Source: Calcarisporiella thermophila CBS 279.70 (lineage: Eukaryota; Fungi; Calcarisporiellomycota). From it: a stretch of DNA of 64,000 bases. Below, in pieces: positions 851 to 63,772 of the stretch; the stretch's first letter is position 1, and every line of letters begins with the position of its first letter. The translations under genes and the position numbers were made by a program. The notes beneath the pieces were generated by a model. The model ran no database searches, was not told where the DNA came from, and saw only the letters and a program-made list of their open reading frames with translations. The stretch is from assembly GCF_041956535.1 (NCBI RefSeq), contig NW_027192214.1:363309-427308 (forward strand), given 5' to 3'.

Positions 851-875
851 CATCCCCCCCCCCCCCCCGATCCTG

Positions 876-1100
876 TTTTTTTTCATTTCCTTTAAGGACG
901 CGGGAACTTGCGTCCTGTGGTTTATTTAATATATATTACAAATGTGAGATGTGCTTTCGGACATGCTTATTAAGTACTAGAAGAACATGGGATATAATTT
1001 AAAGAGTTCCGTGCTTGGAAATGTCGGATTGTTCTTGGCTTCTTCGAAATCGAAGGCTACTTCTTGGATGTCATCGATCCGGATTAGCGAGCTCTTTCCC
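876..1100 (-). mobile_element. Heavily 5'-truncated LINE (family D): ORF tail, 3'UTR and poly(A), flanked by TSD
   Basis: Minus strand reads ...EEAKNNPTFPSTELFKLYPMFF*, then AATAAA, a hairpin (aggacgc/gcgtcct) and A8. Flanked by direct repeats caggatcg(n)atg at 1101..1116 and 851..875, the latter with an expanded G-run. Confidence 0.65.
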
Positions 1101-1197
1101 CATCCCCCCGATCCTGAGCGAGTTGTGACTGTCAAATGGTTTGGGAGTTTTGGCTTGCCCGTACCAAAAACCAATTTTATTGTAACTTTCGATATAA

Positions 1198-1270
1198 GCT
1201 CATGTGGCGCAATGGATAGCGCGTTAGACTTCGGATCTAAAGGTTGCAGGTTCGAGTCCTGCCATGGGCG
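1198..1270 (+). tRNA. tRNA-Arg (TCG)
   Basis: Cloverleaf: acceptor GCTCATG/CATGGGC, anticodon arm TTAGA-CTTCGGA-TCTAA, T arm GCAGG-TTCGAGT-CCTGC; T-runs downstream. Confidence 0.97.
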
Positions 1271-2163
1271 CACAACTTTTGGGTTAATAGAGTTGAATTT
1301 TTTTGGTCGATAAATTTGTATGCTAGTTATTCGAACAATAGTAACAATACAAACTTCCGTCACTATCGAATACGATGGCTAGTAGTATCTGTTTCAATAA
1401 TATTGTTTTGATTTTCTGAGTGGAATTGAAATCAAGCCTCAAGCATTATATTGGCTTTTAGCTTTTCTACGCTGCATTAATTATTAGAGTTAGCACAAAT
1501 TATTAATTTTGATTAAACTTTACAATCTGTCCTCTTATAAACTCTCTATATCAGCCATAGTAATATATTTAGAAATAAAATTTAAATCATCTGAAATTGA
1601 GCTGGCTCAAGTAGATATTAATGGAAAGCTCCAAGTGCTAGTCTAGTAATTCTGCGATTCTTTTTGATGTTAAAACAAATATGTACTTAGACTCTCCAAT
1701 AGTCATTTTTGTGTATTTTCAGTGGGTGTAATTTTATTGGTTTTTTGACACGCGTAATAGACAAACAGTATATGGCTTATTACACGAGTCAAGCGGTAAT
1801 CGATAAATTGATACTATTTTAATTAATACAAAAACTTTGCTTTATGACAACTATTTTATCCTCAATCATATATTATTATTATATAAATAAAATAAAGGAA
1901 TAATATTTATTTTAGTGATTGTTTATAGTGTATTCAGATTTTATAAATAGTATCCATTGTAAAAGCTTTTAAGTGTTTAAGGTGGAATCCATAAAAGGCT
2001 AAATGCAACGAGAAAATAAAACAAGTATAAGAGTCATGTTATTCAATGATATCGGGCAGGTGAAGCATGCTAAAAATACTTTACCATACTAACCGTAACA
2101 CTAAAATCCTATAAATTCGACTCATTCCCATTGTACTTTCATAACACGTTTCTCACTGCGAAA

Positions 2164-2517
2164 ATGAAAAATTTTGTATTTGGTGCACTTATCTTTGTTT
2201 TCCTAGCCATCGTTTTGGCGACGCCTGCTGAAAAGATTAAGCAGGAAAAAGACAACTGCCTTTTTGAGTCACAGGAAAATAAGGGAGTGTATTTGATAGT
2301 GTGGCCAGAGTGCAATTACAAAGGAACACCCCAGAAATTGAGCTTAGTTGGCTGCCATGATGCGACGTCTTTACAAGTTGGCTCATGGAAAGCTCGCAAA
2401 GGATACAAAATAACCTGGTACGACTGGTACACCTGCCCTTCTGATTTAAAAATTCCTCTCTCCAGGAAGTGTAACAAGAAATATCAGCCTGGGTCGGTTA
2501 AAATCAAAAAGCAATAA
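2164..2517 (+). CDS. Small secreted protein (117 aa, 5 Cys) with beta/gamma-crystallin-like Greek-key motifs
   Basis: Signal peptide MKNFVFGALIFVFLAIVLA; motifs VWPECNYKG and VGSWKARKGYKITWY; intronless; TATAAA at ~2110. The fold call is by motif recognition only. Confidence 0.75.
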   Translation: MKNFVFGALIFVFLAIVLATPAEKIKQEKDNCLFESQENKGVYLIVWPECNYKGTPQKLSLVGCHDATSLQVGSWKARKGYKITWYDWYTCPSDLKIPLSRKCNKKYQPGSVKIKKQ

Positions 2518-3236
2518 TCTCTTTTCGATTGATATCTGTTACTTTGAGTCCAATTGTGCATTATTAGCAGTGTTAGCACTATATTAGTATTACTATTGTT
2601 TAATTAAGGTATTTGAGTGCTGAAGTCAGATCCAAACCAAAAAAATTTTTTATGAGTAATGTAATTTAATAAATATTGACATTCGGATACGTTTTAATCA
2701 AACAATATCATGGGTTATTCCTATAACTTCTCTCAAAGATTGACGTTACCTATGCAAAATTTTATATACCTATAATTATAATTATCTTTTGATCTAGAGT
2801 CGACTCTATTAGAGAGAAGCTTTATTGACACATTGCGTCTTCCATATGTGATTGGCGACTCTTCTAGTGAAAATAGAAATCTAAAACTATTTTCTGTCAA
2901 TTCGTTCCCTGTATTTTTTTTCTAAGCCATTCTCATATAAACGTAAAAAACAAAATATCGAATAGTCATAAATAAACTAAAATTTATAGAGGGAAAGAGG
3001 CATTTTACTCTAAACACGGAATCCACGGTAGTTAATAAATTCACTTACTGTACACCATCTCTATGCATCGGTTAATGGAAATATAAACTGCTTCCTCGGA
3101 TTTGCATAAATTTATCTAGGATACGATCTAGTCTATACGATTAGCATTTAATAATAGTAGTCTCTTTTATATCATTAAGTGGCAAAATAATTTAATAGAT
3201 ATTTTGTACAAATAAAAGTCAAAAATTAAAAAACTA

Positions 3237-3321
3237 TCCGGCCACCCGGATTCGAACCAGGGACCTAAAGATTGCTACTTATCACTACAGTCTTCCGCTC
3301 TACCAGCTGAGCTATAGCCGG
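3237..3321 (-). tRNA. tRNA-Tyr (GTA) with 12-nt intron
   Basis: Minus strand: CCGGCTA TA GCTC AGCTGGTA GAGC G GAAGA CTGTAG [tgataagtagca] A TCTTT AGGTC CCTGG TTCGAAT CCGGG TGGCCGG A; canonical 37/38 intron position. Confidence 0.97.
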
Positions 3322-3384
3322 ATTTATTACACTTCAGGTTTTCTTTTTGAAAATATATATTATGATAATTTTAGAATTATTTTT

Positions 3385-3401
3385 AGGCCCCAACCGCTAT
3401 C
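3385..3401 (+). repeat. Target site / TSD copy 1 (aggccccaaccgctatc); copies at 8601..8617 and 9340..9357
   Basis: 8601..8617 matches 16/17; 9340..9357 matches 8601..8618 at 15/18. Both downstream copies directly follow a LINE poly(A). Confidence 0.85.
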
Positions 3402-3403
3402 TC

Positions 3404-3739
3404 TTCCCGCTGGGTAAATGTGTGCTAGCTGGCACAAAGATCAAGAAGTTCCGTACAAAAATCGGGAGTCTCTATAAGACAAGCAAAGGAGAGAATATCA
3501 CTCCGGAATGGAAAGAGACCTCAAGCGATTCCATCAATTGGGAGGTAGCTTGGATGTACTGGAAAAAGCGGCCGAGCGAACCCAAGCATAGGACACTAAG
3601 ATGGAGATTCTTGAAACACAGATTGGTGACAAACATCATCACTAGTAATTGGACAGGAGAACCTAATATTTGCAAGCGATGCACAACCAACGCAGTGGAA
3701 ACCATTAGTCATGCTTACCTGGAATGCCCGGCCATAAAT
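3404..3739 (+). mobile_element. LINE family B ORF2 C-terminal fragment (zf-RVT), fused to family A
   Basis: Near-identical to ~61982..62317 (FPLGKC...CKRC...HAYLECPAIN); similarity stops abruptly at gccataaat. Confidence 0.9.
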
Positions 3740-6700
3740 GAAAACTATTATCAACCCATCACAGACTGGCTTTATCAGAGGGAGGAATATATCTGAAAAC
3801 ACCATGACCATCAACCAGATACTCAACCTCGCAAAAATAGAGGAATTAAACGGGGCGCTCATCCTTCTGGACAACGAAAAAGCGTATGATAGGATAGACC
3901 GAGGATGACTCATGGAATGCCTTAGAGTCTTCGGGTTTGGGGTGAAGTTTACACGTCTAATCGCATCTATATACAAGGAAAACACAGCGGCAGTCATCAT
4001 TAACAATCACATCACTCTACCCTTTCTGGTCAACCAAGGAGTACGTCAGGGCGACCCTTTATCACCCCTGCTCTATAACATTGCCATAGAACCCCTTCTG
4101 ATAAAATTAAGAGCGATCCTTACTGGAATCACTATCCCGAGAGTCACTAACATTGTCACCACAGCCTTCGCGGATGATATTACAGTTGCGGTAGCAAACC
4201 AGCAAGACATAGACACCCTCTCAAAGACACTCGCCGATTTCCAGAGAGCCTCTAACTCCAAAATCAATTACCACAAGTCAGAAGCCGTCCCTCTTTCGTC
4301 GACAGCCAGAGCAACCCTTTCGCCACCATGTGACTTCATCCATGAAGAAGGGACATTCACTCTCCTTGGAATACCATTCAACACCAAAAAGATCTTTCCA
4401 GGCGATGAATATTTTGAAGAACTGCTCACCAGACTGCGGAAAACAGTTAAAACGTGGGGATTAAGAACTCTCTCCTTGAATGGAAAAGCTCTCTTGATTA
4501 ACTCGAAACAGTTATCCAAACTATGGTACACGGCAAAATTGATCCCCCTCCAGCCAAATTCTTGAAACAGCTGGACACAATCATTAGAGACTTCCTATGG
4601 GATAAAAAGCGCCCGCAAATCGCCCTGAGTACAATGCAGCAGCCATCAGGATTTGGATTAGGCCTCATCAACCCCAAACATCAAGTCGACGCAATTTTAG
4701 CCTGGTGGTTCCAACACATTGCCACAACCTCGTTTTGCAGACAACCCTGGGCAAGCCTAGCAATCTACATACTGGAAAAACATTACACTCCCAACGCGCT
4801 GGGAATGGGCATCCTAGCCACCCGTTACACCCAACACAAGCTGATGAGGAAGGACGGTTTATGGCCACACCTCGTAAGAGTGTGGCAGAGTTTAGGTGGA
4901 AAACTGGATTTAACCAAAAGATACAGATTCACCCTAGATGAAGTACTCCCACTCCCCATTGGTAACAATTCCTATTTTACTATAGAAGGAGCACCAGTGA
5001 AAGGGAAGGCAGAAAAATTCGGGCTAGCGAAATTGGAAGATTTCTTCAAACCGCACAGAGACAATATCTACCAACCGATGATCGAACCCGAGGTGCACGC
5101 CCTAGTCGCAAGGAACCCTGACAGATACTCAAGGGAATTCAGAGAACATTATCTCGATATTCACCTACTATGGAGGAGAAAGCTGCTCCGCCTAGACGAA
5201 AGACTCGCCGAGACTCTCACACAACGAATCCCTCCTGTCAGTAACAAACACAATTTTCCTTTAACAAAATGTTCTATTGCAGGGATTGAGACCACCGCTT
5301 ACACCACCAAAGCTGGGAGACTATACAAGCAGGATGCGCCAACCATAATCACCGAGGAATGGAAAGACGTTTCCAATGATGTTGACAGATGGACGAAGGC
5401 ATGGGCTAGGTGGAAAAGTCGTCCGTCAGAACCCAAGCACAGAACCCTTCGCTGGAGACTTATGAAGCATAAAATAGTTACCGGAATCATCACTAGAAAA
5501 TGGACTGGGGATCCTAACACTTGCAAAAGGTGTTCCCTAGGGATACCCGAAACAATCGCACATGCTTTTCTAGACTGCCCAGCTATCGCGCAACTTTGGC
5601 AAAGAGTTGATGAGACAAACTGCCGAATAATTGGAATACCGCCACACGAATCCACGAAAGAAGACAGACTGTCTAGACAAGACAAACAAATAAGTCAACG
5701 CTTCAACGAAGTGGTTGCTATGAGCCACGACATAGCCCTGTGGATAATATACCGCTCGAGACTTGAATTAGTGCTGGACGATGTCCAACCCAATCCGGTA
5801 GCCATAACCAAACAATTTGACCACGAACTACAGCGAGGAATAAAGTCCAAGTGGTGGATGGCAATGAAGCAGAATCGGAAAAGAGACTTCATCGATAAAT
5901 AGTCAAGTGGAAACTGGGTGAACATCATAGATGATTCTGTGATTTTCATCCAGGACACCTCTGAAGATCAAATCCCAGTCCCAACTCCGGCTTGAGAACT
6001 GCACCCAACCCTTCACCGCTGTATATTAATACCATCTCCTTTATCGTTCTTCTCCCTACCTTTCCTTTTTTTTTCTCCTTTCCTCTTCCTTCTTTTACTT
6101 TTTCAATCCTTCCCTTCTCTTCATTATTTCATGTATATAAGCAGCCTATCTTAATACCATTGCACACAACTTTTTATCCCTCCCTCTTACAGTTATTCCT
6201 ATCCCCTTCTTTATTAAGCTAATTTCTGGTTCCATACTTTCCCAGCTCTTTCCTCATCACCTTTTCTTTCTTCCTTTTACACTTAAATCCTTTTCTTTCT
6301 TTCTTGCTTTTTGCAGAATTTGGAGGATAGAAGGAAAAAGCAAGAAAGATGATGAGGCCGTTTTATTGGACAAATGAGCTACTTCCAGAGAATTTGCATA
6401 GAAAATTAAAGAAATTTAAAGAAAAATAAAGAAAAAATCTGAGAATAAATCAAGAGTATAAAAAGCTATCGTTTCCCAAGTGCAACTTCTTGGCCGTTTT
6501 TTGAGCTGGCATACTTCCGTTTGAGAAATGGAGCCCTCGTCCACGCAAGCAACAAATCAGCACGCGAATACTGAAGGATCTCTCTTGGCACTACTCTCTC
6601 CAGTGCCTATCCGCGAGAGACATCAGTGGACGCCAGCGGACGATATAGCGGACGCGATTGGGCTCAAAACACCGTTCGCACCGGAGTCCATCCTCACGTC

Positions 6701-8601
6701 TGAGGAGCGGCAAATAATATGGGACAGCAGTCCCCCCCGATCAGACCTCAAGTATGACGCATCTCTGATGAACCCGGCACAGCAACCACAAGTCACTTCG
6801 TCGAACAGAGCAAAAAACTGGAAAAAGACGGGCGGGGCAAAACAGCCCTCCCCGTCCAATGTTTAGCTTCCGACGCAAGCCCACGACAGGTAGAGCCACG
6901 CGTACCGGTCGGGGGACGTTTGCGAAAATTCAGAAACGCGTGGCGAGGAATCCCCGCCCCTCTATGGATACGCAAGATAATCAGAGAAGGTTACAAAATC
7001 CAATTCTGGAAGGNNNNNNNNNNNNNNNNNNNNNNNNNNNNNNNNNNNNNNNNNNNNNNNNNNNNNNNNNNNNNNNNNNNNNNNNNNNNNNNNNNNNNNN
7101 NNNNNNNNNNNNNNNNNNNNNNNNNNNNNNNNNNNNNNNNNNNNNNNNNNNNNNNNNNNNNNNNNNNNNNNNNNNNNNNNNNNNNNNNNNNNNNNNNNNN
7201 NNNNNNNNNNNNNNNNNNNNNNNNNNNNNNNNNNNNNNNNNNNNNNNNNNNNNNNNNNNNNNNNNNNNNNNNNNNNNNNNNNNNNNNNNNNNNNNNNNNN
7301 NNNNNNNNNNNNNNNNNNNNNNNNNNNNNNNNNNNNNNNNNNNNNNNNNNNNNNNNNNNNNNNNNNNNNNNNNNNNNNNNNNNNNNNNNNNNNNNNNNNN
7401 NNNNNNNNNNNNNNNNNNNNNNNNNNNNNNNNNNNNNNNNNNNNNNNNNNNNNNNNNNNNNNNNNNNNNNNNNNNNNNNNNNNNNNNNNNNNNNNNNNNN
7501 NNNNNNNNNNNNNNNNNNNNNNNNNNNNNNNNNNNNNNNNNNNNNNNNNNNNNNNNNNNNNNNNNNNNNNNNNNNNNNNNNNNNNNNNNNNNNNNNNNNN
7601 NNNNNNNNNNNNNNNNNNNNNNNNNNNNNNNNNNNNNNNNNNNNNNNNNNNNNNNNNNNNNNNNNNNNNNNNNNNNNNNNNNNNNNNNNNNNNNNNNNNN
7701 NNNNNNNNNNNNNNNNNNNNNNNNNNNNNNNNNNNNNNNNNNNNNNNNNNNNNNNNNNNNNNNNNNNNNNNNNNNNNNNNNNNNNNNNNNNNNNNNNNNN
7801 NNNNNNNNNNNNNNNNNNNNNNNNNNNNNNNNNNNNNNNNNNNNNNNNNNNNNNNNNNNNNNNNNNNNNNNNNNNNNNNNNNNNNNNNNNNNNNNNNNNN
7901 NNNNNNTCCACACCCGGGAAATGACTCTCAACCTTCCGCGGAAGAAAGTCAGGGATATATCCAGGGTAGCGCTCAGGCTCTACAAGACCAGAGTAACTAC
8001 CCCTCGGCAGCTCGCTGCATTCCTGGGAACTACGAATGCAGCCTGCCCCGCGGTCATGCCGGGGAGGCTGTTCGCTCGCACACTAATGATGGCGTTATCT
8101 TCAGCTCTGAACGCCAATCCCGACTGGGATACCCCATTCACAATACCGGAGGAAGCGTCCGCTATATCGTCCGCTGGCGTCCACTGATGTCTCTCGCGGA
8201 TAGGCACTAGAGAGAGTAGTGCCAAGAGAGATCCTTCAGTATTCGCGTGCTGATTTGTTGCTTGCGTGGACGAGGGCTCCATTTCTCAAACGGAAGTATG
8301 CCAGCTCAAAAAACGGCCAAGGAGTTGCACTTGGGAAACGACAGCTTTTTATACTCTTGATTTATTCTCAGATTTTTTCTTTATTTTTCTTTAAATTTCT
8401 TTAATTTTCTATGCAAATTCTCTGGAAGTAGCTCATTTGTCCAATAAAACGGCCTCATCATCTTTCTTGCTTTTTCCTTCTATCCTCCAAATTCTGCAAG
8501 GTAGGCCAGGAGCATTACCTGGATGATTTTGACGTAGAAGCTACCCTACCTTTTTAACAGGATAGGATACTTTTCAATAAAGGTCCTTTGTTAAAAAAAA
8601 A
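3740..8601 (+). mobile_element. 5'-truncated L1/Tx1-clade LINE family A (RT, zf-RVT, 3'UTR, poly(A)); inactive; 3'UTR interrupted by a DIRS element
   Basis: RT motifs QTGF, LDNEKAYDR, GVRQGDPLSPLLY, FADD, LLGIP; C-terminal CKRC...HAFLDC. Stops at ~3906 and 5900 and a frameshift near 4550; ORF ends ~5994. Pyrimidine-rich 3'UTR resumes at 8500 and ends with AATAAA and A9 (8593..8601). Confidence 0.93.
6311..8499 (+). mobile_element. DIRS1-like (tyrosine-recombinase class) retroelement derivative with 345-bp inverted arms; YR and most of RNase H absent
   Basis: GGRLRKFRNAW...IIREGYKIQF is a DIRS RT N-terminus and MTLNLPRKK...LAAFLG...AVMPGRLF the post-RT region. The 893-N gap between them is about the size of an RT core. 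Arms 6311..6655 and 8155..8499 are gap-free, with 2 mismatches seen. Confidence 0.8.
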
Positions 8602-8617
8602 GGCCACAACCGCTATC

Positions 8618-9341
8618 ACCCGGTTATGACCCGAAATGTACCCGCTGTAACGCTCCGAGGGATACCATCCGTCACACCTTCTTCGAATGTCCCGAACTCA
8701 CGTCAGTGTGGCATTGGGCGGAGAGGTGTATCAACACCATCTCAGGCCCCCTAAACACTCAGGTGCTGAACCCCAGGAATCTCGTACTTGGCGACCTACC
8801 AGAAGCCCCAAGGATAGTAAGACACGCGGCTCAAATCGTCTTCGATTCGGTGTTATGGCAAATCCATCGGGATCGCATTGCCTTTCATTTTGAAAACACT
8901 CGAGCCTCATCCGAAACCATCATCAATCGGGCCAAGCTGGATATTGAGGAGGCTATAGGAGCCGAACTAACAAGAGCCCGAATAAAGCGACAAATTGAAC
9001 AGTTCCGAAGCAGGTGGTGTAAAATGGGCGCGGTGAAAGGAGCTAATAGAGTGGCTCTAGAACTGGACTGACGCAGTAGCCCCGACTACTAGCCCTTCTC
9101 TTTCTTCATATCTCTCTCTCCATATCACCTATCAAGTCGTTCCCTAATACCCACAGTTCGTTGAGTTTTATTTCTCATCTACCCATTTGAGGAGAAAATT
9201 TGACATGATCAATTTACCCCGAATTGCAATATCGCGTTAATTTCTAGTTTTTATCTCATTTTATTACTTGTAATAATGTAACGATTGTATTTTAGAGTCT
9301 TATTAAACAATAAAGACTCACTTTTGATCAAAAAAAAAAAA
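8618..9341 (+). mobile_element. 5'-truncated LINE family C (zf-RVT tail, 3'UTR, poly(A))
   Basis: Frame reads PKCTRC...HTFFEC...VLWQIHRDRIAFHFE, stop at 9071; AATAAA then A12; homologous to 61447..61706. Confidence 0.88.
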
Positions 9342-9442
9342 GCCTCAGCCGCTATCAATAGCATAGCAACAAGCAAGTAATATCGAGCGTCTCCAAAAAT
9401 AGGTAGCAAAAATATTTTTAGGAGAAATCCAGTCATAAAAAT

Positions 9443-9494
9443 GGGAGGCCAGGGGCAGTACCTGGGTGATTTTGACGTATAAGTTTACCCTTCC
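9443..9494 (+). repeat. Diverged copy of the LINE-A 3'-terminal structured motif
   Basis: gggagg ccagg ggcagta cctgg gtgattttgac gtataagtttac ccttcc aligns to 8500..8550. Confidence 0.75.
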
Positions 9495-10260
9495 ATTCCC
9501 TCCAGAAAAAATATCGAGTGGATGTAAAAAATACATCCCAAGGGAGAAAAAAAAGTGGTTTTTTAATTCTGCTACAGGAAGTACCACAATTCATTTACAA
9601 GATTGCATTGAAGCTATGAAAGCACCTTTTCCAGATATTTCACAGCCTCTTAAAAATGTCATTTTGCGTTGAGCTCATATTGTGGGGGGGGGGGGGAAGC
9701 TTCAGTATGTAGCTACCAATTTTTTTACTCCGAGGAGTATCATTCGGCGTTCTTTTGTTTCCTTTGTCGAGACTTGGCACTTAAAATGACTTTTCTGTAG
9801 TTGTACTGGCGAAGTTTTCTTTATAAGTTAAAGACGCAACCGTAACTCTAATTTAAGCTTCTATGTCGCACTCCTTTCAAAATATCCAATAAATCTTAGT
9901 GATGTACTAATTATGGAGCGCAGGAAGGTTTTTGATTTTTTGACGTATTTTTGAGAGATAATTTATTAGTGAGAGTGGAGGAGAGAAATTGCGGTCGCCC
10001 CAACATACTCAGGTGGGAATAATCTTGAGAAGAGATAAAACGGTTTGTTATGCGGTCTAAGTTTGGAAACCAACTTCACCGTGGAGAGTTTGTACAAGCA
10101 ATGAAGTATATTCGTTGCCTAAGGTGTTGCTTTCTAAAATCCAATTTGATTTGTTCAATATTCAGCTATCAGTTTGAAGTCATTCTGATAAAATATATAT
10201 TGATGGACATGTCAGTGTAAATATATATACATACTACATCGAAATGATAGATATGTTTGG

Positions 10261-13988: not shown

Positions 13989-14562
13989 ATTTCAAGAATA
14001 TGTAACGTAGCAAAGATTGATATAGATTCAACCGGAAGAGAAAAAAATTTATGGACCCAGGAATAAAAAAATAACTGTGAAATGGCTGAAATGTTAATTT
14101 TTATAGGGCGAGAGTTGAATTTATAGAAATTTCGATCAAAAGTCCGAGCGGTTTTGATCGCCCTTGTCAAACTTTCAGAACCGAAAAATGTCTTATTGAA
14201 ATGTTTTATGATAGTTATTTGCTCTTACATATGTAATGGGTGCCGAGATAATGTTATTTTTATCACAGCTAGGAGTGATGCGACTCTTGCATGCAAAAAA
14301 TACGCGTGGTATGCATTGTGCTTTGATATATATATTAAAAGAAAGGAAGGTAATGATAGATTAGAGAAATAAAATATCTATGCATAAGCCACACTTCAAC
14401 GAATTGGAGATTCACTAGGTTCATCCTCCTAATCATCCATCCATCCACCCACCCATCCACCAGAGAGAGGGACACGAGTAAAGAGAAGTGAACGAGAAGA
14501 GAGTAGCTGTTGTTGCTGTTGAATAATCAGTTTAAGAAACATATATAAAACAACTCATCACA

Positions 14563-50657: not shown

Positions 50658-51222
50658 TTTTTTCTTCACGTTTGTATGCCTATATAAACACTCTACATTA
50701 CTATACTAATTTGACGATTTTTCTTTATTTTTTCATCCGCTTATATTTATAACCCCATTGTTTGTGAACAATAATATCTTATAGTGTCCAGCTGTATATT
50801 TGTAAACCACTCTCCTTTTTAAGCACCATCTCTCTTCCTCCTTTATTTCCACTCTATATCTGCAAATTTTGTTTTCGCTTTCTGCTCTCTACGTAATAAT
50901 ATTTAGCGTTTTTATCAGTGATTTTTTTTTTCAAGGAATATAGCTCAATTCTGAAGGAAATAAACGCAATGCAGAACTGCATTGATATTTTTCGAAGATT
51001 CTATTGTTTCAAGCTTTCACCGGTGGAGTTAGAGAGCTCATATTAGAAACTCATACGAGTTGAGAGAATCCAGGAGAAGATAGCCATTTCTTTGAACTTT
51101 ATTCTGCTGCAACTAAAATAGTATTTGGTAAACATCGATGGAAAGTTAAAAAAAAAGGGGGGGGGGGAGGTAAAGTGTCAATCATCTAAAAGAGAAAACT
51201 ACGGAAAATGTAATGTATCAAA

Positions 51223-52943: not shown

Positions 52944-54396
52944 GGTGTGCAGATGGATGTTTTTTCAGATCAGTGGTTGGTTTACTAATGACGATTAAAT
53001 GATCCAGAAAAATGAGATCAGCCTTGAACAGTGTACCTGCCACCCAAGAATTTTTGAGCTAAGATATCCATGAAACCGGTGTGGCTCGAAAAACCTGGAG
53101 CCGCAGCAATTGAATCTGCTCCGTGAAAGTTATCGAGTCAGATTTATGGCGCGGTTTTAAGTGAAAGCGTTTTAAATTAGTCACCTCTAGCATTAATATA
53201 TCTGAAAAAGAGGAGGTCGTCGTAAACCTACTAGCATATATAATAAAAAATGGACACCAATCTATTACAATACGGCTCTCAAGTGCCATTTTCACAACAA
53301 CTATTAGCATCAGAAGTGCACTGGCCCCTTTTTTTTATTAGATGAATCCGGAAACAAAAAAATAATGGGTAAAACTTACCCGTATGTTCTCTTTCTGATA
53401 TGCTTGGATAATTCTAAAGGGAACATAAGCCCTGGAAACCGTGGAAATCAGCTTCCTCTAGATATACGGAGTATTCAATATTTTAATCACCATAGCTAAC
53501 AAACAAACTCGCAGAGAAACCCGAGAAAAGGATCAGCCGGCATCTCATAAAGACTTCGGCACTTAAACTGTACTTTAAATTTGTATCCTCTAGCAATATA
53601 GCTCCATTGATCCTTGAACCATTTATTTAAGTGCGTCCTATCGCAAATACCTCAAAATCTACAGATATAGGATATTGCTCTTGATTCTTTCTTTATCAAG
53701 TGTGAATCTCTATTGTTAAAGAAGATTCATAAAATTGTACAAAAGCTATAATGGAGAAGAATAAATATAAATGTAGGAAAGGTATTGGTTAATGTAATAT
53801 TAGTGTACAGAGCGGTATGAAGGACATGATGATATTTTTCAACACATATAGAAAGAAAAGGAAATGATAATATAAACGGGAGGAAAAAGTTAACTGTTGA
53901 CACCAAATTTCGGCAAGGTTAGTTGAAGGAAAAGGAGAAAATGGACACGATATAGAATATTGCTTATGATCAGCGTAGATACACGTGGAAAAACAAACTT
54001 TTATATCCAGCGCCGCTTGCACCCGCAGCTGTTGATAAACACACGCTGGGTAACATGCGTGTGGGTCAAAAGAATATTTGTGCACAGGAGTGAACGGGTA
54101 TCTTTTAATTCTTTCCTACTACCTTTGCATGCATGCAAATCTGTCCCATATTCTGATCGTTTCGAGAACCATCTCATTTTAGGAATAGCGCGTCTTTAAA
54201 TAAAATCTTGCGGGGATCCAACTGGCGGTTGTAGATAGGTAAGGCAACTCTTAAATGAGAATTCCATTATTTCTAGAAAGGGCACTTATTGGTAGAGACA
54301 TTTCAGTATAGAGTTTAATACTTCAGAAAAGATAAAAGTCACAGAGTGTAAACATGAATCATATTTTAAGGAAAACAAGGAGATGGGAGAGTGTTA

Positions 54397-56652
54397 TCAA
54401 GGCTGGGGTTCGAGGAAGGTCAAGACCCTCTTCGCGAGGCCCACAATTTCGGTTTCATCCGAGACCATATCTTCTCCCTCTGGTTCCTCGGTTGAAACTC
54501 CCGCTTGGGAATTGACCTCAGGCCGGCTTGCAAGACGCGTCACTGCTTCCACAATCGAGCCGGACGATCGAATGCGTTCGGAGAGCCGCCTATCGCCCCC
54601 CTCCAAAAATTGGACGATTGTCCAAATGGCGATGTGCTGGAAGGTGATATCGGGGCTGTCTAGGAATCGCTTTAAATAACCCTGGAGACCCCCCGCGGGC
54701 TGGCTCCACACGTTCACGAATTTCGTGTAGTCCGAAACCTTGGAGGAGAGGTTGCCAATGGCGGCGGCACTGTTTCCTTGCACCTCCAAGCTCTCCGAAG
54801 CCGTCAGGGGAATAAGCACTGCGCAAATATCTAAATCTACTAGCCTGCTCTTTAGCTCCTCGCTCAATGCAAGCACCGCCACGCACGCGGTCATCTCAGA
54901 TTGGGCAGCCAGTGGCACACGCAACACCAAATCTCGGATTCTTCCCACTGCACCCGCATCCACGATTGCCTGCTTATTGCGGCCTGAGCTGGCCGCAAGG
55001 TTTCGCAGCGTGCTCACTGCGTGGCATTGAACTTCTTCATTTTCATCATAGGCTAAGAGGTCGATTAACGGATTGAGAAATCCGGCTTCAATGATGCGAG
55101 ATTCATTCATCGGATGGATGGATATGTTGCGAATGCACGCGACCGATGACAAAATTAATGGGAGGATATTAGATTTAAGTAGTCGAAGCAGAGGCGGTAG
55201 GCCCCGAGATTGAACGATTTCACGTTGATATTTTTCTGTTCATTAAAATAGTCATGTCAATCGCGCGAACAATCCCTCTACAGGTCTACCCATTAGGGTG
55301 CTTTACCATCAGACGCCAAATTTCGCAGCGCCAGTGCAGCCTGACATTGAACCTTCAGCGAACTCGATTCCATGAGCGGAATAAGATATTGTACGAGGCG
55401 GGGTTCGCTTTGTGCCAATTTCTTGCGACTTGAAGCTACATTATTCATCGATATATTAATATATGCGTCTCCTGAAAGGAAAATAAATCCCGTTGAAAGA
55501 AAAAAAAGGATATATATTATTACCATCAACTGCTATATTGCTGAGGGCTGTTGTGCAATAGTACTGAACGTCGGTATCAGGAGCATTTAACAAACTCACC
55601 AACACAGGTATAGCGCCTGAATTAACGAGATGCTGCCGATTTTCCTCTAAAGAGAAATGAGTGAGTTAGAGACATTTCAGTGATTACTCGGCCCTAAAGA
55701 AAGTATATACCTGAGTGGGTCATGTTGAGAAGCGCTCCCGTAGCATTCCGTTGTACACGAAGATCTTTCGATCGAGCAAGTCTGATGAGCGGAAGTAGAG
55801 CACCACTCTTGGCTATTTTTGATTTGTTTTCATCTACACAGGAATAAAAACGTATTAAGGGCCACACAACAACAAACCCCAGTTGACAGAATTTACCGTG
55901 TGTTGCAAGATTTGTTATACATCCGCATGAGTTACATTGAACCTCGACATTAGGGGACATCATTTGCCGTATTAATGGCTCCAGCCCTCCGAGTTTGACA
56001 ATCAGTACCTTATTTTCCGCTGGAATAAGATAGTGCAATATTAGTTTTTCAGTGTGTACATCACACGAATGAAGGTGTACTTACGAGCAACTGCGAGATT
56101 GCCAAGAGCTGCGGATGCGGCGCGCTGCACTTCAACATCATGGGATTGAAGCAAGAACATTATAGGTTCTAAAGTATCACGATCCACTGCACGCACATCT
56201 TAGGAGAGAAAAAGAGTGGATTAGCGGCGGAATTTATTTCCCAGCTCCACTACCAAACTGCTTACCTTTCTCCGTGATCTCCGCAAATGCCAAGGCTGCT
56301 GAGCGCTGCAAATCAACATTGTCGGAGAATGCCAGGGTAGAAAGCGCTCGTAATGGCTCGCCCTCAAAGAAGTTTGTCTGATCGCGGTCTTCGAATTTTG
56401 TGATAATATAATTAATGGTCATATTATGGATCAAAAGTACACTTAATGCTCACTCTCTAGATATTGCAATAAATCAGCAACGGCCTCTCGTTCATTTTCT
56501 TGAAGTAAAGGTTCATAATAGCCCCCACGAGCACGTCCTTGATTATCATTTTAAAAAAAATGTTTAGATAGGCGAATAAATGAAAAATGAGATAAAAATA
56601 GAAAAGGCCTACTTGAGCAACAATCCGTCAAGCAGCTAGAGCATGCACCCAT
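54397..56652 (-). CDS. VAC8: Vacuolar armadillo-repeat protein
   Basis: N-terminal MGACSSC (myristoyl/palmitoyl), [35 protein letters not shown] repeats. Confidence 0.96.
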
Positions 56653-57153
56653 GGTGATGATAATACGCGGAATGCAAGAGTCCTCTTGTGATTAAAATCG
56701 AAAAAAGAAGAGCGTTGAATTTTCAGACAGGTGATCGTTTAACCTCCTGCAGCTATTTATGATTCGCAATATTTATTGGTTGTATCTAATGAGCAATTAT
56801 GGGGGAAAAGAGAGGAGGAAGTGCGTAGGGTAAAATGAACACTTATTTGTCGCGTGAGCGAGATAAAAACTCACACAAGCAAAAGAATGTAAGCCAGTAC
56901 TATTAAGATGTCAAATGGGGTTGTAAGGATAAAAAACCAAGACATCCTCACCTCCAATGTGTGTGACGTGTTTAATATTTTTCTTAGCATGAGATTCAAA
57001 ATTTCAATATAAGAAACATAGAAATACCTCATACAGACAAAAAAAGAATAAGTTAAAACAGTGCCTCCTTAATGGTGATTAAGCGGCCACTATTTATTCG
57101 AATAAATTCACAAGAATATATCCATTCTATTTATAATAAGCGTCAGCAAACGT

Positions 57154-58084
57154 TTAATGCGATAGGCGGATAAAAGTCATGCTATCACTTGGATTGCCTA
57201 AGAGTGCATCAACAACAGAGGGCGTACCTCTTTTACACACATACACCCCCTTGTCTTGCACTCCGTTCTCAAACATACATTCGAGTATTTTAGTAGCACA
57301 GCGAAGTTTACCAGCCTAATGAATATATGCATTAATGTCACCATTAGAAAGTCATAAGTAGAGCAAGTCTGGAAATGCGTTTTACCATCCCCCCTGTCAC
57401 ATCCATCACAGTATTTAACTTATCGCGAGTTTCGGTATTCACCGTTATCTTACTACATCCCTTGTTCACGTCTATTCGAGTTAGAAGTTTAGCCTCCGAG
57501 GACTCAGGGTTCCTATCGTAGACGCCTGCCACATCTGTCACAAAGATGCATCGGTCCACATTGAACACGCGAGCGGCCTCGACCATAAGCGTATCTCCAC
57601 TCACAACTTGACAACCAGTGTCACCGACCAGCGCGAGATCTCCATACATCAGTGGTACAAGCCCCAGCTGAAGCATTCGGCTTGCTTGTGTCATAAGAGT
57701 AGAGAAGTCGCAGGATTCAGTGAGAAGGTTGAAAGTGGGAAGGCTTACGGCTGGGATGTCGTTCTGTATTAGGAGAGATAAAATACGAGTATGAAGAGTG
57801 AGTAGTGCACGACGGGTGTCCGCAATTCCTATAAGCCGCGTGGTCAATACTGCCCCTGATGCGCCATATATACCCTGTTTTAACTCATGTTCATGAACAT
57901 GAGCATGGCCAAAGGATCCTGCTCCGTGAACAAGTAGAAGATGTTCACCGCGATCGCGGAGGAGAAAATAGGCATTTCGAAGTTGGAGGACAAGCGATTC
58001 GAGATCGTTTTCGGGTACAAGCGTTTCTTTGACACGTTTATTTGTGATGGCTGCTCCTCCTAGTTTGACCACTACCACCCTCAT
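57154..58084 (-). CDS. Isopentenyl phosphate kinase-like (amino-acid-kinase family); 1 intron
   Basis: VVKLGGAAITNK, VHGAGSFGH, VVSGD, TDVAGVYDRNP, DVTGGM..K. Confidence 0.82.
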
Positions 58085-58258
58085 TGTTACCTGCCTTCTA
58101 TCGAGGAGAACTTATGCTATTTCAAACTCAAATAAGCCACTCTAAGTAACAAAATTGCTATCTATAACTTTGATTTGGGTTCTTTAAAATCTTTTATTAT
58201 CGATCTATAGTACTAGAGATTACAGAGATCGTGGTGCTACAACAAATATAATGTCTAT

Positions 58259-58940
58259 CTATGAGGAGTGCTCCAATTGATATCTAGCTTTGCATGCTTC
58301 TAAAGCTTCTCGAATAAAAGGTTTTGTTACAAGTTCAATGGCCTCGTGAAGTGGAAACTATTCAAAAAAAAAAATGGTATGCAGGGTTAAAAGAGTATCA
58401 TGCAAAGCTATCCAATTAAAATATATACCCATTTCCGCTGTCTCTGATTCTCTTCAGGCCAGTGGTCTTCTATGTCGACCACTTCTAGCTCATACCAATA
58501 AAAAATCGCTCGGGGCGCACCAGTGGATATCATCTTGGTATGAGGCCAGATTCCAAGATGACAAGATATGCGTCCACGAACGCCAGCTGATATACCAAAA
58601 TAATGCAAATAATATTATGCTCCATTAGACTATAATGGCAACACATTAAATGGAATTGTTGAATAAAACCTTCTTCATAAGTCTCGCGTATCGCAGCACT
58701 CTCGATGCTCTCATCATTTTCCCAGCCTCCTTTTGGCTGATAAAAGCAGAATCATGAATCAGAATCAACTTGAAATAGTAAATTCATCAGATGATTACAT
58801 ACCAGAACCCAGGTGCTGGGCGCTTTACGACTCGATATTAAAAGTACATGACCAGTAATTGGATGGATGGGCACACATCCAGAAACTATCCGAGAGCCGT
58901 TGGAATATACTTGTTTATTGCGGCCCTCTCTAGCTTGCAT
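58259..58940 (-). CDS. DDP1: Nudix diphosphoinositol-polyphosphate phosphohydrolase (Ddp1/Aps1-like); 4 exons
   Basis: AREGRNKQVY, VLLISSRK, WVL-PKGGWENDE...RETYEEAGVRG, WPEENQRQRKW. Confidence 0.9.
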
Positions 58941-59076
58941 TAGAAAAAAGGAAAATAATAATAAGAAATGACAAAAATAAAATTAATAAATTAATTATTG
59001 CCGGTCAAGGAAAACCAGTTTTGAAAAAATATGGATTTATATACTAAGAATTTTGTCGGAAAAAATGTTCACCTAA

Positions 59077-59148
59077 AGCGATGTAGAGCAGTGGAAGCTC
59101 GTCAGGCTCATAACCTGAAGGTCACTGGATCGAAACCAGTCATCGCTA
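59077..59148 (+). tRNA. Initiator tRNA-Met (CAT), copy 1
   Basis: A1:U72, short D-loop AGTGGAA, anticodon loop CTCATAA, T-loop ATCGAAA; followed by T6. Confidence 0.95.
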
Positions 59149-59412
59149 TCTTTTTTATATTCATTCATCTTTAAAATAAAATATCGTATTTTTTCTTCGA
59201 TTTTGCTCTTAAAATATTCGGGTTCGACTTTATACCAAATCGAATTTCATTCTGGTATCGAAGATCAGAGGACTTTAAATCTAGCCAAAATTTTTTTTAA
59301 CACTTGACACTGCTCATCATATGCACTACTGTATATTCGAAACTTGAGCCAAATTCAGTGTAGATTATAGCACCCATTCAACCTCATTTTTTATTTCCAA
59401 ATGTTCAAATTT

Positions 59413-59515
59413 GGCCTAGATATTTCCAATTTATTTTGACGAGGAAAGCTACCCTACCATTTTAACTGTTAAAACTGTTAAACTGTTAAAGATACTTTTC
59501 AATGAGGACTCTTGA
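59413..59515 (+). repeat. Decayed LINE-A 3'-terminal remnant
   Basis: attttgacgaggaaagctaccctaccattttaac...gatacttttcaat resembles 8526..8578; contains a triplicated aactgtta. Confidence 0.6.
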
Positions 59516-60097
59516 CATAAATGAAATAAAACAATGGACTTGTCCTTTTATTGGAGTTTTTTAGAGTAAGCAACAATTCATCCTAATTTTGTATTAAAAC
59601 AGCCTCTAACCATTTTTCCTATACACTAAGATATCATGAAATCGAGACGGATAGCATCGTCTGTTCTAAATCTTACTTCGTCGGGAGATAAATACAAGTT
59701 TTCTAAACTTCTTAACCATTTTTCATTTCTTTTAAAGTAGAATTGAATATTATACAGTAGGGAGTATCCTAATTGCAAGGTCATTTCTCAATTAGAAATG
59801 TAGTAAATTTGACAAATCTATTATATTCATCCAGCTACTAAGTTTCACCTCGTATATCATTGGTTTTTTAAACAAACACACAATAGTGAATAATTAACAT
59901 TTCTCAAATTTTTGCCAAGTAGAGTAAATTTGCAAGCAATCAATGTAACATAATTGGGTATACAAAACGGAAGCAAATAGGAAATTTGAAGACAAGAAAA
60001 ACAAAATCCTCACCAAAAATGAAATGAAAACATTGATCTCCATCAAATATCTCAATATCCCAAAAAATAAAATTACTTCAAAAAGGTTATAAAAGAA

Positions 60098-60169
60098 TAG
60101 CGATGACTGGTTTCGATCCAGTGACCTTCAGGTTATGAGCCTGACGAGCTTCCACTGCTCTACATCGCT
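60098..60169 (-). tRNA. Initiator tRNA-Met (CAT), copy 2, identical to copy 1
   Basis: Exact reverse complement of 59077..59148. Confidence 0.95.
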
Positions 60170-60239
60170 TTGCTCCTTGTTTAAGAGTATCTTAAATTGG
60201 GAATATGGTTGAAATTTCGACGATTTTTTTTTTCCGACG

Positions 60240-60253
60240 CGTTTTTTTAATAA
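60240..60253 (+). repeat. Target site / TSD (cgtttttttaataa); copies at 61921..61934 and 62923..62934
   Basis: 61921..61934 cgtttttataataa matches 13/14; 62923..62934 tttttttaataa matches 12/12. Each sits just after a LINE poly(A) and before the next LINE 5' junction. Confidence 0.75.
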
Positions 60254-61918
60254 CCAACACCGCCGTATCTACTAAATGATATTCTAACCTTCTTCATCAA
60301 TGGAGGAAGGATAGAATGTAGATCACTCCGGCGACAAACCTTTTTGGAGCGGAACATGCCGATACAATCGGAAATGGAGCGTAGATATTCTGCGCAACCC
60401 ACGGAAAGGCTAAAAAGAGCGTGCGAACGTCGCTATAACGATTTTTCCTTAGAATGGGAACACGGATACCTTATCCTGCCCCCCGACCTAGTAGAGAAAA
60501 TCACGAACTGTTCTGCCATACCCCGACAACATCCGCCTCTTCGTTTCCCACTCCATCTTTGTCACCTGGCTGGCGCGCCCGTCCCGGAATACTCCACCCG
60601 ACAGGGAAGGCACTACCAGCGAAATGGCTCTCCGGAACCAGAAACGCTGACGCCCCAATCCTGGTCAGAGGTTGCATCCACGGCAAANNNNNNNNNNNNN
60701 NNNNNNNNNNNNNNNNNNNNNNNNNNNNNNNNNNNNNNNNNNNNNNNNNNNNNNNNNNNNNNNNNNNNNNNNNNNNNNNNNNNNNNNNNNNNNNNNNNNN
60801 NNNNNNNNNNNNNNNNNNNNNNNNNNNNNNNNNNNNNNNNNNNNNNNNNNNNNNNNNNNNNNNNNNNNNNNNNNNNNNNNNNNNNNNNNNNNNNNNNNNN
60901 NNNNNNNNNNNNNNNNNNNNNNNNNNNNNNNNNNNNNNNNNNNNNNNNNNNNNNNNNNNNNNNNNNNNNNNNNNNNNNNNNNNNNNNNNNNNNNNNNNNN
61001 NNNNNNNNNNNNNNNNNNNNNNNNNNNNNNNNNNNNNNNNNNNNNNNNNNNNNNNNNNNNNNNNNNNNNNNNNNNNNNNNNNNNNNNNNNNNNNNNNNNN
61101 NNNNNNNNNNNNNNNNNNNNNNNNNNNNNNNNNNNNNNNNNNNNNNNNNNNNNNNNNNNNNNNNNNNNNNNNNNNNNNNNNNNNNNNNNNNNNNNNNNNN
61201 NNNNNNNNNNNNNNNNNNNNNNNNNNNNNNNNNNNNNNNNNNNNNNNNNNNNNNNNNNNNNNNNNNNNNNNNNNNNNNNNNNNNNNNNNNNNNNNNNNNN
61301 NNNNNNNNNNNNNNNNNNNNNNNNNNNNNNNNNNNNNNNNNNNNNNNNNNNNNNNNNNNNNNNNNNNNNNNNNNNNNNNNNNNNNNNNNNNNNNNNNNNN
61401 NNNNNNNNNNNNNNNNNNNNNNNNNNNNNNNNNNNNNNNNNNNNNACAGTAAGACATGCGGCTCAAATCGTCTTCGATTCGGTGCTATGGCAAATACATC
61501 GGGACCGAATCGCCTACCATTTCGAATGCATTCGAGCATCACCCGAGACAATCATCCTCCGTGCCAAAATGGACATCGAGGAGGCCATCGGAGGTGAACT
61601 GATAAAGGCACAAAAAAGACGAGAGATAGAGTTATTCCGAAGAAGGTGGTACAGTCAGGGAGCGGTAATAGAAAGTTCGGATAGAGCAAGACTAAAACCG
61701 GAGTGACGAAGCAACCCTTCCTCTCTCCCAATCCGCTCTTTCCCTCCTCCCCTCCTCCCCTCCTCCCCTCCTCTTTACTTCATACCTTTCACCAAATACC
61801 CGATCACTATATACATCTAATTTACCCTTTATTCCCCCTTTTCTTATTTCATTGTAATCATTAAACTCTTGTAAGCTATGGAAACTAATAAAAGTCTCCG
61901 TTGATTGATAAAAAAAAA
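60254..61918 (+). mobile_element. 5'-truncated LINE family C (ORF2 C-terminal half, gap 60688..61446, 3'UTR, poly(A))
   Basis: Reading frame opens at 60254, right after the TSD. RFPLHLCHLAG..YSTRQGR is homologous to FPLTKC.IAG..YTTKAGR. The tail is homologous to 8817..9071. AATAAA then A10. Confidence 0.88.
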
Positions 61919-61934
61919 GACGTTTTTATAATAA

Positions 61935-62922
61935 TCCTGGTCCTGCTACAGGGTATACCACAGATTGAAGGACCATGCACGTTCCCGCTGGGTAAATGTG
62001 TGCTAGCTGGCACAAAGATCAAAAACTTCCGCACAAAAATCGGGAGGCTCTCCAAGACAAGCAAAGGAGAGAATATCACTCCGGAATGGAAAGAGACCTC
62101 AAGTGATTCCATCAGTTTGGAGGTAGCTTGGATGTGCTGGAAAAAGCGGCCGAGCGAACCCAAGCATAGGACACTAAGATGGAGACTCTTGAAACACGGA
62201 TTGGTGACTAACATAATCACTAGTAAGTGGACAGGAGAACCTAATATTTGCAAGCGGTGCACAACCAACGCAGTGGAAACCATTAGTCATGCTTACCTGG
62301 AATGCCCGGCCATAAATCAACTATGGCAAAGAGTAGACAATTACGTCTGCCGCATTCTTGGAGTGAGAGCTCACGAATCAACCAAGGAAGACAGACTATT
62401 TGGAACAGACTACAAAACCATGGGCTACCAACGGGAAGTAGTATCAACGGTCCATGATGCAGCAATTTGGACCATCTATCGATCAAGCTTATCGATAATA
62501 ATGGATAACGCCCAACCAAGCGAAATAGCGCTCGCTGAACAACTAGGTCACGAAATGCAAAAAATCGTGAGATCCAAATGGTGGTCAGCGTCCATAAAGG
62601 ATAAGAAAGAAGATTTCCAAGAGCTTTGGTGTAAGGGAAATTGGATACAAGTCCAAGGAGACGAAATATCCTTCAACCAAAACACTTAGCTCCAATACGA
62701 CCTTGCCAAATACCCTACCACCCGCATTCCAATTTTTCCTTTTTTTTTTGTTTGTTTATATTCTTTTTCTCTCTTATATAATACCGTTCTTGAAAAAGAG
62801 GATGGTATTCACACGCTCTACCATTACGCACATGTATTCCTTGTTTCGGAGAACTGCCAAGTCCTTTCACTTAACTTGTATAGGAGACTTTTCAATAAAG
62901 ATCCTTAAATCCCAAAAAAAAA
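61935..62922 (+). mobile_element. 5'-truncated LINE family B (zf-RVT tail, 3'UTR, poly(A))
   Basis: ORF to 62689 with CKRC...HAYLEC; ends gagacttttcaataaagatcct...A9. Confidence 0.92.
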
Positions 62923-62934
62923 TTTTTTTAATAA

Positions 62935-63224
62935 TTCTAAGAGCTTTGGTGTAAGGGAAGCTGGGTACAAGTCCAAGGAGACAAATATCTTTCATCCAAT
63001 CCACTTAGCTCCATTACGACTATACCGAATACCCAACCACCCGTATTCTAATTTCCTTTTTTTTTCTCTTCCCTCACTCGTATACCACTTTCCTTGAAAA
63101 ATAGGAAAGTTAGGCACCTCTCTACCATTTCTTACATGTGTTTCTTGTTTTCTGATGTCTATCAATTTCCTTTATTAAGCACGAAAATGGATACTTTTTA
63201 ATAAAGATCCTCCTAACAAAAAAA
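62935..63224 (+). mobile_element. Short, more diverged 3' copy of LINE family B
   Basis: Aligns to ~62615..62922; ends gatactttttaataaagatcct...A7. Confidence 0.85.
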
Positions 63225-63710: not shown

Positions 63711-63772
63711 TAAATTGAGAAGAATATGGTTGAAATTTTGACGGTTATTTTCGACGCGTTTTTTGAATATTA
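63711..63772 (+). repeat. Diverged direct copy of the tRNA-iMet upstream flank (60193..60253)
   Basis: The sequence taaattg..gaatatggttgaaattt.gacg.tt.ttt..cgacgcgtttttt is shared. Confidence 0.75.

Follow-up and report, generated by a model that had tools for sequence, protein, structure and literature searches.

To our knowledge, the retroelements that target tRNA genes in fungi are all long terminal repeat (LTR) elements that use an integrase. Among retrotransposons without LTRs, targeting of tRNA genes has so far been described, in the literature searched, only in social amoebae. TRE5-A inserts 44–54 bp upstream of tRNA genes, in the opposite orientation, with the protein of its first open reading frame (ORF1) binding TBP, Brf1 and Bdp1 of the transcription factor TFIIIB and with the B box being needed (PMC5911963), and reviews report tRNA-targeting non-LTR elements only in dictyostelids, namely TRE5, TRE3, NLTR-A and NLTR-B (PMC5911963, PMC5006619). 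The window analysed here, i.e., the whole stretch of 64,000 nucleotides at C24:363309–427308 in the genome of the fungus Calcarisporiella thermophila (assembly of 28.2 Mb in 116 contigs), carries long interspersed nuclear elements (LINEs) stacked on the upstream flanks of tRNA genes. We regard it as very probable that a single L1-like clade (families A, B, C and F), together with a short interspersed nuclear element (SINE), integrates by target-primed reverse transcription (TPRT) at a position that is measured from the tRNA gene and not read from the sequence.

tRNA genes were called with ARAGORN and Rfam, those bearing an intron via ARAGORN -i. In the window they are the following.

1198–1271, plus strand: tRNA-Arg(TCG), target gene of stack 1 (ARAGORN and Rfam, 71 bits)
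3237–3321, minus strand: tRNA-Tyr(GTA) with a 12-nt intron, target gene of stack 2 (Rfam 56.8 bits, ARAGORN -i, manual anticodon reading)
59077–59148, plus strand: tRNA-iMet, insertion-free, its upstream flank running into the promoter of an amino-acid kinase gene (ARAGORN, Pfam and repeat scan)
60098–60169, minus strand: tRNA-iMet, target gene of stack 3 (ARAGORN and Rfam)

The gene at 3237–3321(-) is labelled Asp by ARAGORN -i; its identity as tRNA-Tyr, as given in the initial annotation, follows from manual reading of the loop C-T-G-T-A-G, with anticodon GTA and the intron placed after position 37. The two initiator-like tRNA-Met genes are identical in sequence.

All LINE DNA of the window lies upstream of tRNA-Arg(+), tRNA-Tyr(-) or tRNA-iMet(-), and the 5' ends of the elements face the tRNA. 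Pfam zf-RVT or RVT_1 domains were detected in the ORFs 3347–3796, 3912–4565, 4523–5902 and 61901–62689, all on the plus strand, and tblastn added further LINE pieces at 8619–9068(+), 60254–60682(+) and 61446–61694(+), as well as an ORF1 piece at 246–394(-). The stretches that the window has in common with 31 other loci of the genome are 1–853, 876–1106, 3404–3739, 3862–6348, 8461–9566, 60254–60687 and 61446–63477. No repeat in common with these 31 loci was found over 9567–60253, which holds the gene block, so that all LINE DNA of the window is confined to tRNA upstream flanks. The initial annotation had seen every LINE with recognisable coding sequence on the 5' side of a tRNA gene and pointing away from it, had recognised none in the 49-kb gene block, and had seen at least four families using unrelated targets located 82–97, 64–80 and 71–84 bp upstream of the respective tRNAs. 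All three distances were reproduced, families A, B, C and F were recovered, and no motif common to the three targets was found.

The same arrangement recurs across the genome. A six-frame search with a 459-aa C-terminal piece of ORF2 as query returned 101 matches, and 10-kb stretches were taken around the first 20 match groups (loci L001–L020, two of which overlap). A tRNA was present in 18 of these 20 LINE-centred loci (ARAGORN), and in the two without one (L011 and L016) the 5' side of the LINE runs into an assembly gap. To estimate tRNA density, the matches to a control pattern (180) were subtracted from those to a B-box pattern (596), leaving an excess of about 416 in 28.2 Mb, or approximately one tRNA per 68 kb. 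At this density the chance of finding a tRNA in a 10-kb stretch is below 20%, and even at a generous 20% the probability of 18 out of 20 is about 3e-11. Over the loci and the window, 45 of 62 LINE ORF segments meet a tRNA on their 5' side, and 44 of the 45 lie upstream of it in head-to-head orientation, the single exception having an assembly gap between the LINE and the tRNA. Counted by tRNA, all those facing a visible LINE stack do so head-to-head (24/24, comprising 12 amino-acid identities plus initiator Met; sign test 2^-24, about 6e-8). A nearest-tRNA test on coordinates alone was dropped, since 63 tRNAs were listed and the true nearest one, e.g., the tRNA-Tyr of the window, was often absent from them.

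Insertion distance was scanned outward from 30 tRNAs, counting each poly(A) behind which stands a 13-mer found, with at most two mismatches, in the first 170 bp of the flank. Twenty-two such events, each combining a poly(A) with a target site duplication (TSD), were recorded at 15 of the 30 tRNAs, and 20 of the 22 begin 61–72 bp upstream (start offsets 61, 61, 63, 64, 65, 65, 65, 66, 66, 67, 67, 67, 68, 68, 69, 69, 69, 70, 72, 72, 81 and 93). In the event at 93, one solo LTR copy is matched to another. Pairing the flanks with the wrong tRNA as a control gave 1.5 events per permutation, scattered over 4–155 bp, and the same scan of the downstream sides of the same 30 tRNAs gave zero events. Read by eye, the duplications are 13–18 bp long, start 62–73 bp and end 78–88 bp upstream. 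No motif is common to the 15 targets, the composition of which goes from T-runs to G-rich to mixed; being unrelated, they do not show the one conserved target sequence that characterizes a Tx1-type element. The initial annotation had looked to distance, orientation and target sequence at further copies to decide its case, and the sampled loci gave a sharp distance peak, a complete orientation bias and no target consensus.

ORF2 of these elements encodes an APE endonuclease (PF03372), RVT_1 (PF00078) and zf-RVT (PF13966), as detected by Pfam. The N-terminal 609 aa of the L028 ORF2 are collinear with residues 7–572 of human L1 ORF2p (PDB 8sxt; E = 4e-53), and the reverse transcriptase (RT) region alone matches L1 at E = 3e-20, with R2 proteins scoring much lower. 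Judged by this ORF2 collinearity, the elements are L1-like and make up at least four divergent families, with protein divergence between families of up to 70%; of the label 'L1/Tx1-like' proposed initially, it is the L1 part that this supports. All C. thermophila families form one clade (SH-aLRT 98) against 46 of the best database matches, in a quick-search LG+G4 tree where most C. thermophila rows fill less than half of the columns. The closest relatives found are L1-like LINEs of fungal, animal and environmental origin, the matches in the tree including LINEs of Rhizopus, Mucor, fish, mosquito and Chara, at 25–35% identity. An outside relative, P0010 (L033), whose fork the tree leaves unresolved, lies on a 7-kb contig in which no tRNA was found and which offers only 157 bp upstream of the first ORF.

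Upstream of ORF2, loci L028 and L031 carry a putative ORF1, whose open frame spans at least 199 aa and includes a CX2CX4HX4C knuckle, for which the Pfam zf-CCHC match falls below cut-off. Comparison of ORF1 between families was not significant (E = 0.09), and neither an intact full-length ORF1 nor a full-length element copy was found among the examined loci. The copies end 3' in AATAAA-type signals followed by poly(A), with three types of tail.

In the window, family A occupies 3796–8601, family B 3402–3795 and 61935–63226, family C 241–850, 8618–9340 and 60254–61920, and the family F tail 874–1100. Stack 1, upstream of tRNA-Arg, reads outward from the tRNA as follows.

1101–1116: proximal target duplication, CAGGATCGGGGGGATG on the minus strand, 82–97 bp upstream of tRNA-Arg
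874–1100, minus strand: 3' tail of a family F LINE, about 226 bp, 5'-truncated, with poly(A), 85–93% identical to copies in nine loci
851–873: the target duplication a second time, its G run expanded (repeat search)
241–850, minus strand: 5' head of a family C LINE, comprising the 5' end and ORF1 as far as the CCHC knuckle, truncated on its 3' side (tblastn, translation)
150–246, plus strand: inverted copy of the tRNA-Arg upstream flank (offsets 7–103, 97 nt, 100% identical; sequence match)

The tail at 874–1100 was assigned to family F by comparison with L017, in which it follows the end of a family F ORF2. Matches to CAGGATCGGGGGGATG occur at 1101(-), at 860(-) and, inverted, at 225. The family C head at 241–850(-) matches the L028 ORF1 at 83% (tblastn) and L031 at 80% nucleotide identity over 608 bp, and lengthens the known ORF1 by 450 bp in the 5' direction. 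Just before the inverted tRNA-Arg flank, an LTR-like end (...CGTAACA) is present at 141–149, and the sequence from 28 to 149 is repeated in L009 and L018. A second tRNA-Arg(-) with the same score is located at C24:359729–359801, 3.5 kb to the left of the window, and 150–246 is probably the displaced flank of this second, head-to-head gene, pushed outward by an LTR insertion.

Stack 2, upstream of tRNA-Tyr, comprises the following features.

3385–3401: target duplication copy 1, AGGCCCCAACCGCTATC, a 17-mer 64–80 bp upstream of tRNA-Tyr
3402–3795, plus strand: piece of a family B LINE covering the zf-RVT region and joined to the family A copy that comes next, with the junction at about 3745–3850
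3796–6311, plus strand: family A LINE, 5'-truncated within the RT, with RVT_1, zf-RVT, a stop at 5902 and the start of the 3' untranslated region (UTR) (Pfam)
6312–8461: nested DIRS-like element with inverted terminal repeats, in the family A 3' UTR, holding the assembly gap 7014–7906
8462–8601, plus strand: end of the family A 3' UTR and poly(A) (comparison with uninterrupted copies)
8601–8617: target duplication copy 2, one mismatch to AGGCCCCAACCGCTATC, after the poly(A)
8618–9340, plus strand: family C LINE, 5'-truncated, with poly(A), 77–78% aa identity to L002a and L015a
9341–9356: target duplication copy 3, degenerate, after the next poly(A)

The family A copy at 3796–6311 is 94–96% identical to those of L017 and L007, in which the uninterrupted element, collinear with the LINE of the window, goes straight from the equivalent of about 6311 to that of about 8462. 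The inverted ends of the nested element measure about 250 bp, and the ORF fragments on both sides of its gap resemble, by eye, DIRS-type RT regions. The fused family B and family A pieces sit inside a single pair of target duplications, for which template switching or a later deletion would be possible explanations.

Stack 3, upstream of tRNA-iMet(-), is composed as follows.

60240–60253: target duplication copy 1, CGTTTTTTTAATAA, a 14-mer 71–84 bp upstream of tRNA-iMet(-)
60254–61920, plus strand: family C-like LINE, 5'-truncated, with poly(A), holding the assembly gap 60688–61445 (flank alignments)
61921–61934: target duplication copy 2, one mismatch (repeat search)
61935–62922, plus strand: family B LINE, 5'-truncated, with zf-RVT and poly(A) (Pfam, locus comparison)
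62923–62934: target duplication copy 3, partial (repeat search)
62935–63226, plus strand: short family B 3' fragment with poly(A), oldest layer of the stack (locus comparison)

The two sides of the gap 60688–61445 align to aa 400–542 and 646–728 of a related ORF2 with similar identity. Being collinear, they are compatible with one element, about 309 bp of which would be missing against 758 N in the assembly, continuity and frame being unproven. Further out, 63722–63769 is a direct copy, 85% identical, of the tRNA-iMet(-) flank 60201–60252 (offsets 32–83, 52 nt); it lies 3.5 kb outward, beyond the LINE stack and about 490 bp of sequence without poly(A), and is not a standard TSD.

Taken over the window, the repeats of the target duplications far exceed chance (0–0.06 expected). 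Such repeated copies indicate that each stack is made of serial insertions at the same nucleotides, with the newest copy closest to the tRNA.

Assembly gaps often start 20–100 bp upstream of tRNA genes, within the retroelement stacks (L001, L004, L006, L008, L013, L015, L018 and L019). The stacks would explain why gaps cluster beside tRNA genes in this assembly, and with gaps inside them, copy numbers and stack contents are underestimated. Likewise, several gene models annotated as 'uncharacterized protein' near tRNA genes are accounted for by LINE ORFs.

The partner SINE is 338 bp long and joins a tRNA-like head (A and B boxes, CCA-like end) to the 3' tail of LINE family C (e.g., L015:1319–1656 and C7:1125515–1125852). 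At least 188 candidate copies were counted genome-wide, the best 40 of them at 94–100% identity, and none was found in the window. Its insertion site and orientation are those of the LINEs. Beyond the loci examined, coordinates place four SINE copies (on C17, C33, C29 and C9) 86, 83, 81 and 87 nt upstream of listed tRNAs, on the opposite strand. Family A copies are 95–96% identical to each other and, given this value and that of the SINE, the system looks recently active.

A further layer, which the initial annotation did not contain, is found closer to the tRNAs. Between certain tRNAs of different kinds (His, Lys, Gly; also Phe, Ala and Gly, His), 60–100 nt of the flank are alike at 90–98% identity, outward from about 9–17 bp upstream. 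One such repeat, about 440 bp in length, is bounded by TGTTG...CAACA and has perfect 4-bp duplications around four of its six copies; it lies 9–10 bp upstream of tRNA-Lys, tRNA-His and tRNA-Gly. Its copies are the following.

L019:5775–6214, copy of the repeat of about 440 bp
L007:5580–6046, copy of the same repeat
L015:1246–2041, copy of the same repeat
L014:9148–9582, copy of the same repeat
L003:5845–6282, copy of the same repeat
L004:1856–2294, copy of the same repeat

A second repeat family, ending in ...CGTAACA, lies 7–25 bp from at least eight tRNAs, including the tRNA-Arg of the window. Both repeats look like solo LTRs of Ty3-like elements inserting near the start site of RNA polymerase III (Pol III). 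5' transduction, considered as the cause of the flanks common to different tRNAs, was ruled out, these flanks being solo LTRs with TG..CA ends and 4-bp TSDs.

Solo LTRs occur 7–20 bp upstream of many tRNAs, and LINE and SINE copies insert into them at the usual distance. In L015 a SINE lies inside a solo LTR, 61–81 bp from tRNA-Gly. The same position within the LTR is taken in L007 by a family A LINE; there the LTR is an older copy, later displaced about 480 bp outward by a newer LTR. The use of one LTR-internal position by both indicates that the distance to the tRNA, not the sequence, picks the site, and the displaced LTR of L007 indicates that off-peak stacks can come from a later insertion nearer the tRNA.

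Two further observations concern tRNA flanks. At L007:5965–5995, about 60–85 bp upstream of tRNA-His, a 15-nt insertion made up solely of a 3' tail of the family C/SINE type and an A-run is flanked by an 11-nt duplication, with the distance to the tRNA being the usual one; this is an extremely 5'-truncated insertion. At L002:6080–7738, an ORF with Integrase_H2C2 and rve domains is bounded by 81-bp inverted repeats and ends 30 bp upstream of a weak tRNA-Gly match, which is a further element type at a tRNA flank.

The nick geometry is read directly from the junctions. The strand carrying the tRNA sequence is nicked about 62–73 bp upstream of the mature 5' end (about -65) and primes on the poly(A), and the other strand is nicked about 78–88 bp upstream (about -82), giving the 13–18-bp duplications. 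Such two-strand geometry gives a fixed polarity, with the element 5' end always towards the tRNA and the poly(A) away from it, and reuse of the same site leaves the newer copies stacked closest to the tRNA. The strict distance interval, the strict polarity and the indifference to sequence, taken together, point to a protein tether on the tRNA transcription complex. The ribonucleoprotein (RNP; ORF1p and/or ORF2p) would be held by the Pol III pre-initiation complex, most likely by the upstream edge of TFIIIB. In yeast tRNA genes some 55 bp separate this edge from the mature 5' end, and the first nick would fall about one helical turn beyond it, with fixed polarity. By inserting there, the elements may gain a safe haven within a genome of 28 Mb that is dense in genes.

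The strongest competing account is guidance by a nucleosome or the polymerase, in which chromatin sets the position and a phased nucleosome or a Pol III subunit is recognised, as Ty1 does via AC40 and nucleosomal DNA, with the nick at a fixed rotational position. It would suit nicks that, at 62–88 bp upstream, lie beyond the expected end of TFIIIB and further out than the 44–54 bp of TRE5, and offsets with a spread of about 10 bp and a single one at 82 bp. Targeting of the Ty1 type, however, gives broad periodic windows over hundreds of bp and both orientations (PMC5911963), whereas here a single interval of about 10 bp with strict polarity is observed, and no second peak appears one nucleosome further out. 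We therefore hold guidance by chromatin to be unlikely.

Considerably less plausible is random or weakly biased insertion followed by purifying selection that spares only the harmless tRNA flanks of a compact genome. The gene density and the 49-kb gene block without copies are what it would predict, but selection cannot yield a 10-bp interval and one orientation at 24 of 24 tRNAs, nor the reuse of identical nucleotides seen in the three TSD copies at tRNA-Tyr and at tRNA-iMet, and it leaves unexplained why the downstream sides of these tRNAs are free of copies. A sequence-specific endonuclease of the Tx1 or R1 type, reading a motif upstream of tRNA genes, would account for the exact reuse of a site within a stack; with 15 targets lacking a common motif, and the same distance kept in unique flanks and in unrelated solo LTRs, we give it hardly any credence. 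Segmental duplication of tRNA and LINE units, or misassembly of repeats, might be suspected from the frequent gaps in the stacks, the paired tRNA-Arg and tRNA-iMet genes (local duplicates) and the repetition of some flanks, but is most improbable given the many kinds of tRNA involved, the flanks, truncation points and TSD sequences that vary by locus, and the common flanks being solo LTRs with their own 4-bp TSDs.

Some points weigh against a tRNA-measured position held by a Pol III tether. The tether, also put forward in the initial annotation, is one that we infer by analogy, the contacted factor being taken from TRE5-A. The target of stack 1, at 82–97 bp from tRNA-Arg, is off the peak, as is the L032 stack, about 490 bp from tRNA-His, which may be explained by a later insertion nearer that tRNA. 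Four 5S rRNA genes were found, with no LINE nearby among the matches listed, which form a partial list, and this absence is uninformative on other Pol III targets. Finally, the genome sample consists of about 240 kb of loci plus the window, the loci having been picked through LINE matches, and many stacks are interrupted by assembly gaps.

On balance, we lean towards the view that a fungal L1-like clade evolved Pol III-guided integration independently of the dictyostelid TREs, with at least four LINE families and a SINE using one nick geometry (about -65 and -82), alongside a Ty3-like LTR element inserting near the transcription start. Each tRNA gene would then be a layered record of insertions. 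A community of fungal LINEs and SINEs with this habit would mean at least two separate convergences of TPRT elements on the Pol III complex, and would offer a second, independent system in which to study how a transcription complex positions an endonuclease-RT RNP. In practical terms, divergent families with one geometry would help to locate the contact surface, and a young SINE and a culturable thermophilic host would be at hand; with such a host, the machinery, if the reading is true, would carry out TPRT at a naturally directed site and might be heat-stable. A search of the full-text literature, with most subscription journals outside its reach, returned no fungal LINE or SINE targeting tRNA genes and no transposon study of C. 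thermophila, and the paper on the CBS 279.70 genome contains neither the word 'retrotransposon' nor a discussion of tRNA genes (PMC11393059).

Compared with human and other L1 elements, the C. thermophila LINEs show the same ORF2 collinearity, poly(A) after AATAAA, frequent 5' truncation, 13–18-bp TSDs and mobilisation of a SINE. L1, however, nicks a loose TTTT/AA genome-wide, whereas here a motif-free position relative to the tRNA is used. The fungal L1-like LINEs (Zorro3 of Candida and those of Rhizopus and Mucor) have the same set of PF03372, PF00078 and PF13966, together with ORF1 zinc-finger motifs comparable to the knuckle of the putative C. thermophila ORF1. The C. thermophila families nevertheless form their own clade, separate from the Rhizopus and Mucor sequences. 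As to targets, Zorro3 inserts at poly(A) tracts, with Zorro1 and Zorro2 located in subtelomeric regions (PMC7175516).

Like Ty3 and Ty1 of Saccharomyces and Tj1 of Schizosaccharomyces japonicus, the present elements are retrotransposons of fungi for which Pol III genes serve as safe havens, and Ty3 does so through TFIIIB (PMC5911963). Those three are, by contrast, LTR elements with an integrase that insert in both orientations, Ty3 at the start site and Ty1 in broad nucleosomal windows. It is the C. thermophila solo LTRs at -7 to -20 that look like a counterpart of the Ty3 type.

The comparison with TRE5, drawn already in the initial annotation, proved apt with respect to insertion 44–54 bp upstream, opposite orientation and contact between ORF1 and TFIIIB (PMC5911963). 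TRE5-A, TRE5-B and TRE5-C, as well as NLTR-B of Polysphondylium, have in common with our elements an ORF2 with APE, RT and zinc finger, a narrow upstream interval, the opposite orientation, an oligo(A) tail, TSDs, the presence of several families in a compact genome and probably a separate ORF1 (PMC5911963, PMC5006619). Differences concern the host, a fungus of the Mucoromycota lineage and not an amoeba, the interval, 62–88 instead of 44–54 bp, the CCHC knuckle in ORF1 and the tRNA-derived partner SINE at the same site. Non-LTR structure, a narrow upstream interval, opposite orientation and sequence independence, i.e., the behaviour of TRE5-type elements, are all present in C. thermophila, and it is on behaviour that the likeness is drawn.

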